A stretch of DNA of 64,000 nucleotides, taken from positions 868,001-932,000 of the forward strand of contig CATNEN010000007.1 in the NCBI GenBank assembly GCA_950097015.1, in the 5' to 3' direction. This document shows, in pieces, positions 5,843 to 57,833 of the stretch. The notes under the pieces were generated by a model. That model did not search any database, was not told the origin of the DNA, and was given only the letters and a program-made list of their open reading frames with translations. The stretch comes from Macrostomum hystrix. Taxonomy: Eukaryota > Animalia > Platyhelminthes. A program made the position numbers and the translations under genes. Positions within the stretch are counted from its first letter, which is position 1. Each line of letters opens with the position of its first letter.

Positions 5843-5946
5843 AGCGATTAGCAATTAGCAATTAGCAATTAGCAATCAGCAATTAGCAATCAGCAATTAG
5901 CAATTAGCAATTAGCAATCAGCAATTAGCAATTAGCAATCAGCAAT
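5843..5946. repeat. Heptamer microsatellite (AATTAGC/AATCAGC)n
   Basis: Direct reading of the sequence. Confidence 0.9.
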
Positions 5947-13989: not shown

Positions 13990-14232
13990 ATATTTGAAGG
14001 CTGCGTACGGCTGTTCAGTCCATGGACAGTTCAGTCCAGTCCAAGTCCACACTCATTGCCCCAGCTAGTGCTGGTACCGATTTAACAGGCAACAGCTGGG
14101 TTGAACCAAGGCAGTTTAAAGTTAAGTATATTCCTAAAGGATACAAACTGTTTCAATGGAGTCGGGAATCGAACCCCCGACCTTCAAGCCGTAAGACCGA
14201 CGCTCTAAATCACTGGGCAACAACCCCCTTAA
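13990..14232 (-). mobile_element. tRNA-derived SINE family A (CORE-like central domain)
   Basis: Minus strand shows an A box, B box ggttcgattccc, a CORE-like segment, a 3' part atggactgaacagccg and an AT-rich tail. Homologous to 54579-54905. Confidence 0.8.
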
Positions 14233-14239
14233 TGTAGTG

Positions 14240-14325
14240 AAGCCCAGGAGGCCAAGACTCGAACTCATGACCCCTGGGTCAGAATTTTGAAGCTCTGACC
14301 AGTAGGCTGATGTTAAACTGAAAGC
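14240..14325 (-). mobile_element. tRNA-like SINE head fragment
   Basis: Minus strand tggtcagagc...gagttcgagtc (A and B boxes) without a complete cloverleaf. Confidence 0.45.
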
Positions 14326-14355
14326 TTTTATTGACAATATTAAAGGTGCATGTTA

Positions 14356-14600
14356 GGGGGGGGTGAGTGACAGAGCAGTCTAACACATTTGCCTCTCGCA
14401 CCAAGGTCCCTGAGCTCGATTCCGCGTCGAGGCCACCTTCGTTTGGGGCGCAGTGCCAACCACCAAGGCACAGTGAGAGTGTACACTACCTGACGATGAG
14501 AAAGTCAGGGGCAGATGTACACACCTGAATGAGTGTGTGCTCAGGAGTCAGCGGTATGGGCAGAACTGCCACCTCGCTGGCGATAATATTATTATATAAT
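14356..14600 (+). mobile_element. tRNA-derived SINE family B (internally deleted copy)
   Basis: Shares the head and ggcacagtgagagtgtacact..gaaagtcagg..gtgctcaggagtcagcg with 21798, 35627 and 57196. ATT-rich tail. Confidence 0.8.
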
Positions 14601-51435: not shown

Positions 51436-51814
51436 ATGAAATCTTATGTATTGGCTCCAGGTTTTTTTCAAATATTTAAAATTCGATTTTTTTCTCATTG
51501 TTGATGCGTTGGTTGATTCTGTCGTCAGTTATTTAGATTGTGTGGAAATCTATTTAATTGTTGCATTGATTTCAATTATCATCCGTGTCTTTAGTGTACT
51601 AATATGGAAAATAAATGCATATTCAATACTCATATTTACTGCATAACCTTTGAACGTACTTTGAGAAGCTCAAATGATTCTCTGAAGTGTTAGCTAGGAT
51701 AAATATTATGTAGTGAAGTTCCAGAAATTTCTAGGTCAAAGTTTATGAGTGGAATTTCCTAGTCCCCTAAATTCGAACTTCTATAATAAAAAAATATATC
51801 AAACTTCATAATAC

Positions 51815-53280
51815 ACAAACTACATAATCCACAAACTACATAATCCACAAACTACATAATCCTCAAACTACACAATCCACAAACTACATAATCCACAAAC
51901 TACATAATCCACAAACTACATAATCCGCAAACTACATAATCTACAAACTACATAATCCACAAACTACATAGTCCACAAACTACACAATCCACAAACTACA
52001 CAATCCACAAACTGCATAATCCACAAACTACACAATCCACAAACTACATAGTCCACAAACTACACAATCCACAAACTACACAATCCACAAACTACATAAT
52101 CCACAAACTACACAATCCACAAACTACACAATCCACAAACTACATAATCCACAAACTACATAATCCACAAACTACATAATCCACAAACTACATAATCCAC
52201 AAACTACACAATCCACAAACTACATAATCCACAAACTACACAATCCACAAACTACATAATCCACAAACTACACAATCCACAAACTACATAATCCTCAAAC
52301 TACACAATCCACAAACTACACAATCCACAAACTACATAATCCACAAACTACATAATCCGCAAACTACATAATCCACAAACTACATAATCCACAAACTACA
52401 TAATCCACAAACTACATAATCCTCAAACTACACAATCCACAAACTACACAATCCACAAACTACATAATCCACAAACTACACAATCCACAAACTATATAAT
52501 CCACAAACTTCACAATCCACAAACTACATAATCCACAAACTACATAATCCACAAACTACATAATCCTCAAACTACATAATCCACAAACTACACAATCCAC
52601 AAACTACACAATCCACAAACTACATAATCCACAAACTACATAATCCTCAAACTACATAATCTACAAACTACATAATCCTCAAACTACACAATCCACAAAC
52701 TACATAATCCTCAAACTACACAATCCACAAACTACACAATCCACAAACTGCATAATCCACAAACTACATAATCCACAAACTACATAATCCACAAACTACA
52801 TAATCCTCAAACTACACAATCCACAAACTACATAATCCACAAACTACACAATCCACAAACTATATGATTCACAAACTACATAATCCTCAAACTACACAAT
52901 CCACAAACTACACAATCCACAAACTACATAATCCACAAACTACACAATCCACAAACTATATGATCCACAGACTACATAATCCACAAACTACACAATCCAC
53001 AAACTACACAATCCACAAACTACATAATCCACAAACTACACAATCCACAAACTATATGATTCACAAACTACACAATCCACAAACTATATGATCCACAAAC
53101 TACACAATCCACAAACTACACAATCCACAAACTACACAATCCACAAACTACATAATCCACAAACTACACAATCCACAAACTATATGATTCACAAACTACA
53201 TAATCCACAAACTACACAATCCACAAACTATATGATTCACAAACTACATAATCCCCAAAAACATGATCCACAAACTTTAT
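51815..53280. repeat. 16-bp minisatellite (AAACTACATAATCCAC)n
   Basis: Tandem units. Confidence 0.95.
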
Positions 53281-53700: not shown

Positions 53701-56700
53701 ATGAGCGCTGGAGCTGGCTCCAGCGGCAACTTGAAGCAATCTCAGCAACAGCAGCAGCAGCAGTTGCCAGCAGGCAGTGGCGAAGATATGGACGGCCTGG
53801 CCGCTGCTTACGAACGCTTGGCTGTGCGCTTCAACCAACTGGAAGCCGCTTACAATCAGCTGAGGCCAGCGGCAGCTGCAGCCGCTGCAGCCGCTTCGGC
53901 TTCGTCTAGTTCGGCTCCGCTGCCCGCTTGTTTTCGTTCGACAGCGGCTGATAGCAGTTCAGCGGCGGCAACCGCTAGCGCAGCCTCCGCCTCCGCTGCT
54001 CACGATGACGAATCCTCCTTGGCGTCAGCCGGCGCGGTAGCAGACGCCGCAAAAACGCTGCTACTGACGTCAACTTCGCCGATCTCTCCAGGTGCCTCCA
54101 CCGTGGCCAAGCCACAGCCTCATCATACTCTTCATCATCCACACCAGCAGCAAATGCAGCCGCTGCTTAGCAACAAGCCAGTCAGTCTGCTCCTAGAAGA
54201 GATTGAAAGATTGCGCGAGAGAGCGGAACGGGCCGAGAGCCTGGCCGCGGCCTGGGAGAGGCAGGCCGGGCACACTGTTGAACAGCTGGAGATGCTCAGC
54301 AGCCAGCTGGAGGAGTTGCACTCGGCTGCCATGAACGCCGGAGAGGAGGGTGGCCGGGCGTGCAGGATGCTGGAGGCCGGGCTGGCTGGCCTTCGCCGGT
54401 TGGTTAGCGGCCAGAGAGCGCTGCTGGATAAGCTGATGCTGCGCGAGACGCTGCGCTTTCAACAGCAGCAGCAGCAGCAGCGGCGCAGGCGTCACGCGCC
54501 TGATTCATCTTCATGGTTAGTTGCATCATCATAAAGGCAAACCCAGCCAGCATCAGGCTGGACTCTAGTTTCATCAAAGGAGGTTGTAGCTTTGTGTTTA
54601 GAGCATCGAACTCAAGGCTAACTGATCGGGGGTTCGAATCCCGACTCCACTGGAACAATTTGTGTCCTTTAGCAAGACACTTAACTTTTCATTGCTTCAG
54701 TTCACCCAGCTGTTAAATGGGTAGCAGCATTAGCTGGGATAATTGAGGGTGGGAGTGGCGTCCCCCACAGTCGATGGACTGAACAGCCGGACGCAGTCTT
54801 CATATGCGCCGCGCAATAGCTGCGGCTCAATTGGGACAGTTGTGACAAAATGTTTTTGGTGTTATTATTTATATTAATATTAGCGTTATTATTTTTATTA
54901 TTATTATATAATAAAGCACTTGACTTTCAGTAGGTAATTTAGTTCGCTATCACCTGCTATTCACCCTAGGCAATCTGTTGACGCGGACCTTCCCGACGGC
55001 AGCAACGACCAGCATCGGCAGCCGCACAAGCAGCAGCTGCTTCGCAAAGTCCGCCGACGCAAGCGGCATCATCAGCCGCATCAGCCGCCGCAGCAGCTGC
55101 ATCGCTTTGCCGACGGAGACAACGAGGCCGACATTGACGACGAGATTGACAACGACGTTGATAACGACGAAAATGACGACGATGATGAGGTGATTGAATA
55201 CGCGCCTGATGGCTCGGCTGTGGCTGCTGCAGCCACCGCTGCTTCCGCGCCATCTGGTGGCTCTCAGTACGACAACTATCAGCAGCAAGACGCTGAGGGC
55301 GCCGTCGGCGGAGCCGGCGCCAGCGGTGACAACTGGAGCCGCTTTTTGCTGGCTCCTTCGTCGAGTCTGCTGCCGCGCACCGACTCGCTGGATCATCTGC
55401 GAGACGACGACGATGATCAGGGAGGATACGCAATTGGCGGCGCCACAGGGCTCAGCAGCTTCGCTGGGGGCATGCAGGTGATTTATTGTATGTCCATCAA
55501 TCATTCTGTCAGTCAGTCTGTTCTGTCCATCAATCATTCTGTCAGTCAGTCTGTTCTGTCCATCAATCATTCTGTCAGTCAGTCAGTTCTGTCCATCAAT
55601 CATTCTGTCAGTCAGTCAGTTCTGTCCATCAATCATTCTGTCAGTCAGTCAGTTCTGTCCATCAATCATTCTGTCAGTCAGTCTGTTCTGTCCATCAATC
55701 ATTCTGTCAGTCAGTCTGTTCTGTCCATCAATCATTCTGTCAGTCAGTCAGTTCTGTCCATCAATCATTCTGTCAGTCAGTCAGTTCTGTCCATCAATCA
55801 TTCTGTCAGTCAGTCAGTTCTGTCCATCAATCATTCTGTCAGTCAGTCTGTTCTGTCCATCAATCATTCTGTCAGTCAGTCTGTTCTGTCCATCAATCAT
55901 TCTGTCAGTCAGTCAGTTCTGTCCATCAATCATTCTGTCAGTCAGTCAGTTCTGTCGATCAATCATTCTGTCAGTCAGTCACTTCTGTCCATCAATCATT
56001 CTGTCAGTCAGTCTGTTCTGTCCATCAATCATTCTGTCAGTCAGTCTGTTCTGTCCATCAATCATTCTGTCAGTCAGTCAGTTCTGTCCATCAATCATTC
56101 TGTCAGTCAGTCAGTTCTGTCCATCAATCATTCTGTCAGTCAGTCAGTTCTGTCCATCAATCATTCTGTCAGTCAGTCAGTTCTGTCCATCAATCATTCT
56201 GTCAGTCAGTCTGTTCTGTCCATCAATCATTCTGTCAGTCAGTCAGTTCTGTCCATCAATCATTCTGTCAGTCAGTCTGTTCTGTCCATCAATCATTCTG
56301 TCAGTCAGTCAGTTCTGTCCATCAATCATTCTGTCAGTCAGTCAGTTCTGTCCATCAATCATTCTGTCAGTCAGTCTGTTCTGTCCATCAATCATTCTGT
56401 CAGTCAGTCAGTTCTGTCCATCAATCATTCTGTCAGTCAGTCAGTTCTGTCCATCAATCATTCTGTCAGTCAGTCAGTTCTGTCGATCAATCATTCTGTC
56501 AGTCAGTCACTTCTGTCCATCAATCATTCTGTCAGTCAGTCTGTTCTGTCCATCAATCATTCTGTCAGTCAGTCTGTTCTGTCCATCAATCATTCTGTCA
56601 GTCAGTCAGTTCTGTCCATCAATCATTCTGTCAGTCAGTCAGTTCTGTCCATCAATCATTCTGTCAGTCAGTCAGTTCTGTCCATCAATCATTCTGTCAG

Positions 56701-57833
56701 TCAGTCAGTTCTGTCCATCAATCATTCTGTCAGTCAGTCTGTTCTGTCCATCAATCATTCTGTCAGTCAGTCAGTTCTGTCCATCAATCATTCTGTCAGT
56801 CAGTCTGTTCTGTCCATCAATCATTCTGTCAGTCAGTCAGTTCTGTCCATCAATCATTCTGTCAGTCAGTCTGTTCTGTCCATCAATCATTCTGTCAGTC
56901 AGTCAGTTCTGTCCATCAATCATTCTGTCAGTCAGTCAGTTCTGTCCATCAATCATTCTGTCAGTCAGTCTGTTCTGTCCATCAATCATTCTGTCAGTCA
57001 GTCTGTTCTGTCCATCAATCATTCTGTCAGTCAGTCAGTTCTATTAATCCATCATACGGCAGGAAATCAATTCTTTGGAATTTCTGCGAATCGTTCTGTC
57101 AATCAACCAGCTGTATATATCAATCAAGTTTACTGACGGTAGTATTATTCCCAATTACAAACAGGGCCTTACGAAGTCACGAAGGATTTGGGCCTAATGG
57201 TCGGTGGCAGAGCAGAGTTGTTTGCCTCTCGCACCAAGCTCCCTGAGCTCGATTCCGCGGCGAGGTCACATTCATTTGGGGCGCAGCCGCGGAGAGAAGG
57301 CTTGGAGGGCTCGCAATTGTCTTGCAATGTACGCCTTTGAAGCCCAACCTCCATGGCACAGTGAGAGTGTACACTGCCTGACAATCAGAAAGTCAAGGCA
57401 GATGTATGTGTGGCCGCGTACAGTATCTGTGTGCTCAGGAGTCAGCGGAATGGGCAGAATCGCTGGCTGCGGGTCAAGTGTGTATTGCCAAATTATTTGC
57501 CATTGCCCGCAGCCCTCCTGCAAATATTATTATCACTATTATTAGGGCCTGGAGATGAGGCACTACAACTCAGTTGACGACATGCACGCCTGGCTGGCTG
57601 CCGGGGACACATCCTGTGGTGGCAACGCCGGCTCCGGCGACATCGACATTTTGCTTGACGAAGACGACAGAAACGTTCATCATCATCAGCAGCAGCATCT
57701 GATGATGGAGACTGACTCGGCTAGCGGATTCGCAGAGCGGATGCATTGTCCAGTCTGCGGACTGGTCATGCCGCCGAACGGTGATCTGTCCGCATTTAAT
57801 TTGCATGTAAATAGCCATTTTGCTGACGATTAA
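53701..57833 (+). CDS. Coiled-coil protein with a TBK1-binding-like segment and a C-terminal UBZ-type zinc finger (TANK/AZI2/TBKBP1-like). Exons 53701-54515, 54970-55487 (or 55477), (57165-57199), 57546-57833
   Basis: N-terminal LAAAYERL coil, ACRMLEAGLAGLRRLVSGQRALLDKL segment, HCPVCGLVMPPNGDLSAFNLHVNSHF zinc finger. Phase-compatible junctions. AATAAA near 57866. Confidence 0.7.
54579..54905 (+). mobile_element. tRNA-derived SINE family A (CORE-like), full-length copy
   Basis: B box ggttcgaatccc, CORE-like segment at 54661-54721, ATT-rich tail. Confidence 0.85.
55490..57045. repeat. 33-bp minisatellite (CTGTCCATCAATCATTCTGTCAGTCAGTC[A/T]GTT)n
   Basis: Tandem units. A variant pair recurs at 55957 and 56485 (528 bp = 16 units). 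Confidence 0.95.
57196..57544 (+). mobile_element. SINE family B inserted with a GGGCCT duplication
   Basis: Family body and ATT tail. gggcct at 57190-57195 and 57545-57550. Confidence 0.8.

Follow-up and report, generated by a model that had tools for sequence, protein, structure and literature searches.

Several kinds of retroposon-derived splice site are known, and they form the background for the locus described here. Alu and other short interspersed nuclear elements (SINEs) can give rise to 3′ splice sites by providing a pyrimidine tract and an AG, and the insertion of transposons such as the introner-like elements can create an intron outright. The locus in question lies in a stretch of 64,000 nucleotides (nt) of the flatworm Macrostomum hystrix (contig CATNEN010000007.1, positions 868,001 to 932,000), referred to below as the window, in whose coordinates all positions are given. 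It is a three-exon gene on the plus strand (53701-57833) that encodes a coiled-coil protein with a C-terminal UBZ1-type zinc finger, of the sort found in the TAX1BP1 and CALCOCO2 adaptors, and its second intron probably ends in a sense SINE.

The locus is probably best explained by a tolerated SINE insertion at the 3′ end of an ancestral intron, with the element now probably supplying the acceptor and no intron having been gained. This reading is built on the anatomy of the element, the colinearity of the orthologue in Macrostomum lignano, the age of the SINE copy and the continued constraint on the last exon. A first-pass annotation of the window had instead placed the SINE within a coding exon and had it removed as a new intron, with a junction of 55477 to 57546 offered as an alternative. 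That junction, and the AG at the boundary of the element, are supported here, while the gain of an intron is not.

The orthologous gene in Macrostomum lignano

With the last exon as query, a full HMMER search led to an M. lignano fragment in UniProt (P0001, 73% identity), and word searches led to two further M. lignano proteins, namely the full-length orthologue of 539 amino acids (BOX15_Mlig019574g1 at NCBI, here P0024) and a paralogous copy (P0023). The comparison with P0024 was made exon by exon rather than through a joined protein model. Exon 1 aligns with residues 1-255 at 68% identity, the block DNWSR...LDHLRDDDD of exon 2 with residues 389-427 at 77%, and the last exon, from its very first residue, with residues 438-539 at 67% (E 2e-33), the stretch from the aligned block of exon 2 to the boundary measuring 11 residues in the window against 10 in P0024. 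Across that boundary (marked by a slash here and below) P0024 reads ...GVQ/GLETRHYNS, and the window has ...GMQ, which ends at 55477, and GLEMRHYNS, which starts at 57546; the same Q/G junction is seen in P0001. The paralogous P0023 follows exon 2 as far as ...EVQ and then passes into unrelated sequence, and since this new sequence does not begin with a GT-encoded valine, it marks an exon boundary and not the read-through of an intron. The GenBank models of M. lignano come from a genome-guided RNA sequencing (RNA-seq) assembly (PMC5730564), so the junction in P0024 rests on transcripts.

The intron that separates Q from G in phase 0 (55478-57545) can be taken as ancestral, since an exon of M. 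lignano ends at the corresponding residue. The peptide that the first-pass annotation had placed in the protein is missing from the orthologue, as the 11-residue translation of 57167-57199 finds no match in P0024 and GVQ is joined there directly to GLETRHYNS; the orthologue thus uses the boundary equivalent to 57546 without 57165-57195, at a site whose SINE-free state is suggested by the age of the copy, as described below, and it is this state of an orthologue that the first-pass annotation had named as refuting its model. An intron made by the element would be expected to be absent from orthologues and to have as its limits the element plus one duplication. Here the Q/G junction is present in P0024 and P0001, P0023 diverges after VQ, and the SINE makes up only the last 349 nt of an intron of 2068 nt. 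With an intron that is present in the orthologue and whose limits differ from those of the element, the locus would not be an intron gain.

The age of the SINE and the constraint on the last exon

All searches of the animal's own genome covered the M. hystrix assembly (220,453,370 bases in 42 contigs; PMC10468722). For the family of the element in intron 2, here called SINE-B, they returned 3512 first-look candidates, and the 40 that were scored share 76-82% identity with the window copy. When 31 other copies were aligned with their flanks, they were found to have (ATT)n tails and a common head with box A- and box B-like motifs; in about 20 family copies, duplications of the target site, 7-13 base pairs (bp) long and 0-5 nt from the head, could be made out. 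The duplication of the window copy is GGGCCT or AGGGCCT, and the first-pass annotation was right that GGGCCT at 57190-57195 and at 57545-57550 flanks an element of 349 nt whose tail is of the (ATT)n type. Being short, dispersed in many copies, variably duplicated at its targets and furnished with a simple-repeat tail, the element is a genuine member of a SINE family. The only pointers to a possible transfer RNA (tRNA) origin of the head are its box A- and box B-like motifs, and neither ARAGORN nor the Rfam tRNA model made a tRNA call for the head of the window copy or of six others.

Measured against the consensus of the 31 other copies, the window copy carries 9.8% substitutions and 5 indel events and is the most diverged of all 32, the others standing at 3.1-7.9%. 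This suggests a copy that is old within M. hystrix but that arose long after M. hystrix and M. lignano had separated. Since the copy is 9.8% from its consensus and the proteins of the two species differ by about 30% even in their conserved parts, the M. lignano site is taken to be free of the SINE. An insertion common to both species was considered and rejected on the same figures, as a divergence of 9.8% would be far too young for such a difference between the proteins.

The fate of the last exon with the SINE beside it was gauged with a simulation of neutral decay, in which, over 20,000 runs, the 288-nt exon changed at the rates observed for the SINE copy itself. The open reading frame (ORF) stayed intact in 2.2% of these, and in 0.015% it did so with no more than one of the final 29 residues altered. 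In the animal the ORF of the exon is intact, and of its final 29 residues a single one is different in M. lignano; its identity to P0024 is much like that of exon 1. Its translation scores above the curated cut-off of the Pfam profile PF18112 (25.8 bits against 23.2), and P0024 matches structure chains of the TAX1BP1 UBZ; for the N-terminal coiled coil no curated family came out above its cut-off. Paralogous copies had been proposed in the first pass as a place where an empty site might be found; in the M. hystrix assembly the last exon proved to have neither a further copy nor a haplotype with an empty site. The last exon has been kept under selection with the SINE in place, and an in-frame splice into it is therefore very likely in use. 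A separate observation on the gene product concerns P0001, which is without 73 residues that are present in P0024 and P0023, so that RRRRR is joined straight to DDDEVIEY, and either alternative splicing or a difference between models is suggested for the region homologous to the end of exon 1 and exon 2.

The constraint on the last exon bears directly on the alternative that survives best, in which the C-terminus is broken: splicing would still run to the old CAG at 57164, which with the conserved donor is out of frame and leads to a stop at 57195-57197, and the zinc-finger exon would be untranslated or would be reached in a minor isoform only. The upstream acceptor and its branch-point-like motif are indeed intact and would be reached first, and CAG is the preferred acceptor motif (PMC8629364). 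However, the ORF of the last exon is intact over its 95 codons, its zinc finger is conserved almost perfectly and a poly(A) signal follows, all of this next to a SINE that has accumulated the substitutions and indels given above, and the two outcomes of the neutral simulation make such preservation without translation hard to accept. We consider this alternative unlikely.

Splice signals at the end of intron 2

From 5′ to 3′, intron 2 consists of a 33-bp array, the motif tactgac, a CAG, a unique piece of 31 nt and the SINE (Table 1). The motif tactgac was judged to be branch-point-like by the general CTRAY consensus. The array, which is an observation in its own right, fills three quarters of the intron and is open in two frames, giving rise to spurious ORFs of 648 and 586 amino acids.

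In the favoured reading, a SINE mobilised by a long interspersed nuclear element (LINE) would have inserted in sense on the line leading to M. hystrix, either directly at the 3′ splice site of intron 2 or no more than a few bases away, and its target duplication would have taken in the first five bases of the exon together with the G, and probably the whole AG, of the acceptor. Since a target duplication of this kind copies the boundary between AG and exon, a second in-frame acceptor would have been available from the moment of insertion. Intron 2 would now end in the SINE, with the U/A-rich, interrupted (ATT)n tail serving as the U-rich tract. Splicing would run from the conserved donor at 55477/55478 to the AG at 57544-57545, which is immediately followed by the duplicated GGCCT, and Q/GLE would be restored exactly, leaving the protein colinear with the M. 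lignano orthologue.

The signals agree with this picture in several respects. The sequence tattag/GGC at 57545/57546 places an AG on the boundary between the SINE tail and the duplication, as the first-pass annotation had also seen, and from the donor CAG/gtgatt it is reached in frame, so that what had been put forward as the alternative junction is the one conserved in M. lignano. The motifs enriched in Macrostomum are GT[G/A]AG for the donor (the M. lignano donor motif) and CAG for the acceptor (PMC8629364), and the conserved donor CAG/gtgat matches the former at four of its five positions. The acceptor at 57545 is probably the one in use.

Some points weigh against the favoured reading. At the proposed acceptor the trinucleotide is TAG, and the branch-point candidates that the SINE tail offers are weak. 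The upstream CAG, which has the motif preferred in Macrostomum, is intact with a textbook branch-point-like motif 28 nt before it; its product would be truncated. Some use of the upstream CAG may thus occur and give a truncated isoform. The divergence of the SINE copy, in addition, may partly reflect a divergent source copy and not age.

The model of the first-pass annotation is less probable again than a broken C-terminus, and we regard it as very unlikely. It holds that the SINE struck a coding exon that began at 57165, so that the mRNA would be joined from 55487 to 57165, would contain a micro-exon of 35 nt (57165-57199) and would lose the SINE as a new phase-0 intron of 346 nt (57200-57545); the site before insertion would read ...gatttgggcctggag, with the 31-nt piece as coding sequence. 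Its frames and phases do fit, and the coordinates given for it all proved correct. Deleting 57196-57550 (355 nt) joins the frame starting at 57167 to the ORF that ends at 57833, the acceptor cag/57165 is present in a phase that suits the phase-1 donor 55487/gtatgt, and the interval from the GT at 57200 to the AG at 57544-57545 measures 346 nt and is in phase 0, as described. A strong acceptor with a branch-point-like motif is available in the CAG at 57164, and GTGAGT does occur in some heads of the family, both at 14361-14366, close to where it had been reported, and in copies L029 and L034.

Against all this stands the orthologue. The model adds about 15 residues relative to M. lignano, in which no such residues are found and the Q/G boundary is held in common, and since the orthologue is colinear across Q/G the 12-15 residues of the proposed exon cannot be accommodated. 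Two donors are needed, gtatg and gtcgg, which match GT[G/A]AG poorly and would have to compete with the conserved CAG/gtgat, and an open frame of 15 codons in the right phase would, by a rough estimate, turn up by chance about once in six cases. Were the model true, an intron would have been gained specifically in this lineage, and a conserved adaptor protein would have received an insertion of 15 residues.

The three GGGCCT copies and the history of the insertion

There are three copies of GGGCCT within 390 nt, of which the first and the third are preceded by an A and stand at AG/G acceptor-like sites, and no one simple insertion event accounts for all three. As the lineage should already have had Q/GLE before the insertion, an AG must have stood directly before GGCCTGGAG, and with this in mind two histories, H1 and H6, both fit as to which copy would be the true 5′ duplication.

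In H1, the old acceptor would be the CAG at 57164, the duplication would be AGGGCCT and the insert would carry 29 extra nt at its 5′ end. The site before insertion would read ...acaaacag/GGCCTGGAG, which is a textbook acceptor context, and a duplication of 7 bp is within the range of the family. On the other side, among about 25 full-length copies the surplus at the 5′ end never exceeds about 5 bases, and the GGGCCT beside the SINE head would have to be a coincidence. A source for the 26-nt piece at 57170-57195, as expected of a 5′ transduction, was sought, and the piece proved unique in the genome at up to 3 mismatches, a uniqueness that is not decisive at about 10% divergence. In H6, the duplication would be ATT(A/T)GGGCCT, of 10 bp with one mismatch, and the old acceptor at 57188-57189 would have lost its A later (A>T at 57189), the site before insertion reading ...gaaggattag/GGCCTGGAG. 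This duplication is of a length typical of the family and abuts the SINE head; against it count the purine-rich context of the acceptor, the strong decoy 25 nt upstream and the chance occurrence of AGGGCCT at that decoy. In H1 and H6 alike, it is the boundary at the acceptor that the insertion struck and duplicated.

A third history, in which the SINE struck the first 11 nt of the exon behind a former phase-0 acceptor aag/57185 (protein ...Q-DL-GLE...) and the intron grew to take in 57185-57545 at the cost of two residues, is possible but weak and the least probable of all, for although aag/GAT at 57184/57185 is in phase with the conserved donor and no mutation of the duplication is needed, AAG in a purine-rich context makes a poor acceptor, and the present junction would match M. 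lignano only by coincidence.

Table 1. Features of the gene and of its second intron, in window coordinates.
Feature	Position	Strand	Remarks
Exon 1	53701-54515	+	ATG to donor tg/gttagt, phase 2; coiled-coil region
Intron 1	54516-54942	+	Holds a sense SINE of a second family
Intron-1 SINE, second family	about 54575-54907	+ (sense)	Found by own-genome search
Exon 2	54943-55477	+	Open frame; C-terminal end ...GGMQ; homologous to P0023
Intron 2	55478-57545	+	Putative phase-0 intron between Q and G; 2068 nt
Conserved phase-0 donor CAG/gtgatt	55478-55483	+	Boundary after Q common to P0024, P0001 and P0023
Phase-1 donor gtatgt (first-pass annotation)	55488-55493	+	Does not match GT[G/A]AG
Tandem array	55491-57042	+	33-bp unit, 47 copies, 97% matches, Tandem Repeats Finder (TRF) score 2950
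Branch-point-like tactgac	57131-57137	+	28 nt before the AG at 57163-57164
Upstream CAG acceptor	57162-57164	+	Candidate original acceptor (history H1)
GGGCCT, first copy	57164-57169	+	Preceded by A; overlaps the cAG acceptor; absent from the first-pass annotation
31-nt piece	57165-57195	+	Unique in the genome; no counterpart in the orthologue
GGGCCT, second copy	57190-57195	+	Adjoins the SINE head; 5′ duplication in histories H2 and H6
SINE copy	57196-57544	+	349 nt, sense; box A/B-like head; (ATT)n tail interrupted by atcact
TAG acceptor at SINE tail/duplication boundary	57543-57545	+	Candidate; in frame with the conserved donor
GGGCCT, third copy	57545-57550	+	3′ duplication; last five bases encode the start of G-L
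Last coding exon	57546-57833	+	288 nt, 95 codons and stop
UBZ1-type zinc finger (Pfam Zn-C2H2_12, PF18112)	57747-57821	+	Residues 68-92 of the last exon
AATAAA	57866-57871	+	33 nt 3′ of the stop codon

Other repeats in the window

The acceptor of exon 2 is placed at 54942/54943, alternatively at 54969/54970, and the intron before it carries a SINE of a second family. This family returned 3060 first-look candidates at about 90% identity, with matches that cover the query from position 86 or 91 to 338; it looks younger, and its copy does not fill intron 1, where about 60 nt on one side and 35 nt on the other are not SINE sequence. The two families meet at 13992-14600 of the window, where an antisense member of the intron-1 family adjoins a sense copy of SINE-B. 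The SINE-B copy with the GTGAGT head has internal deletions in its body. At another locus of SINE-B (L006:1782-1901), two inverted 3′ ends form a long hairpin, and spurious matches to plant microRNA models in Rfam are found there. Tandem repeats are also conspicuous in the window. An array of a 16-bp unit in about 100 copies (51656-53276) lies just upstream of the gene, and a large array with a periodicity of 12/24 bp begins at 5856 and is made up of about 150 overlapping repeat copies.

Comparison with known systems

The locus offers what seems to be a natural example of a gene that has survived a retroposon strike on a splice site. It can also serve as a control for work on introns made by SINEs, in that such an origin cannot be concluded from a SINE that adjoins an exon with a neat open frame, and it is the exon boundary of the orthologue that decides. 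The three GGGCCT copies, together with the intact and old-looking acceptor upstream, make up a small test case for the choice of acceptors in flatworms.

Among the systems with which the gene and its SINE may be compared, the protein itself resembles the UBZ1-type adaptors TAX1BP1 and CALCOCO2, which act in autophagy and NF-kB signalling, in its C-terminal finger of the form CPxC...HxxxH and in its matches to TAX1BP1 UBZ structures, and it differs in having one finger only. With intron gain by the insertion of transposons, as in the introner-like elements, the locus has in common a sense SINE within a gene and a duplication at a splice boundary; in contrast to that system, the intron here would predate the SINE, which accounts for the last 350 nt of 2068. 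By its sequence, the locus would rather belong to the known class of transposon-supplied splice sites, since here too the end of a retroposon appears to provide both a tract and an AG boundary for the host to use. It differs from other transposon-derived 3′ splice sites in that the tail is a sense (ATT)n repeat which, with the target duplication, would restore a junction that already existed and bring no new exon sequence into the protein.

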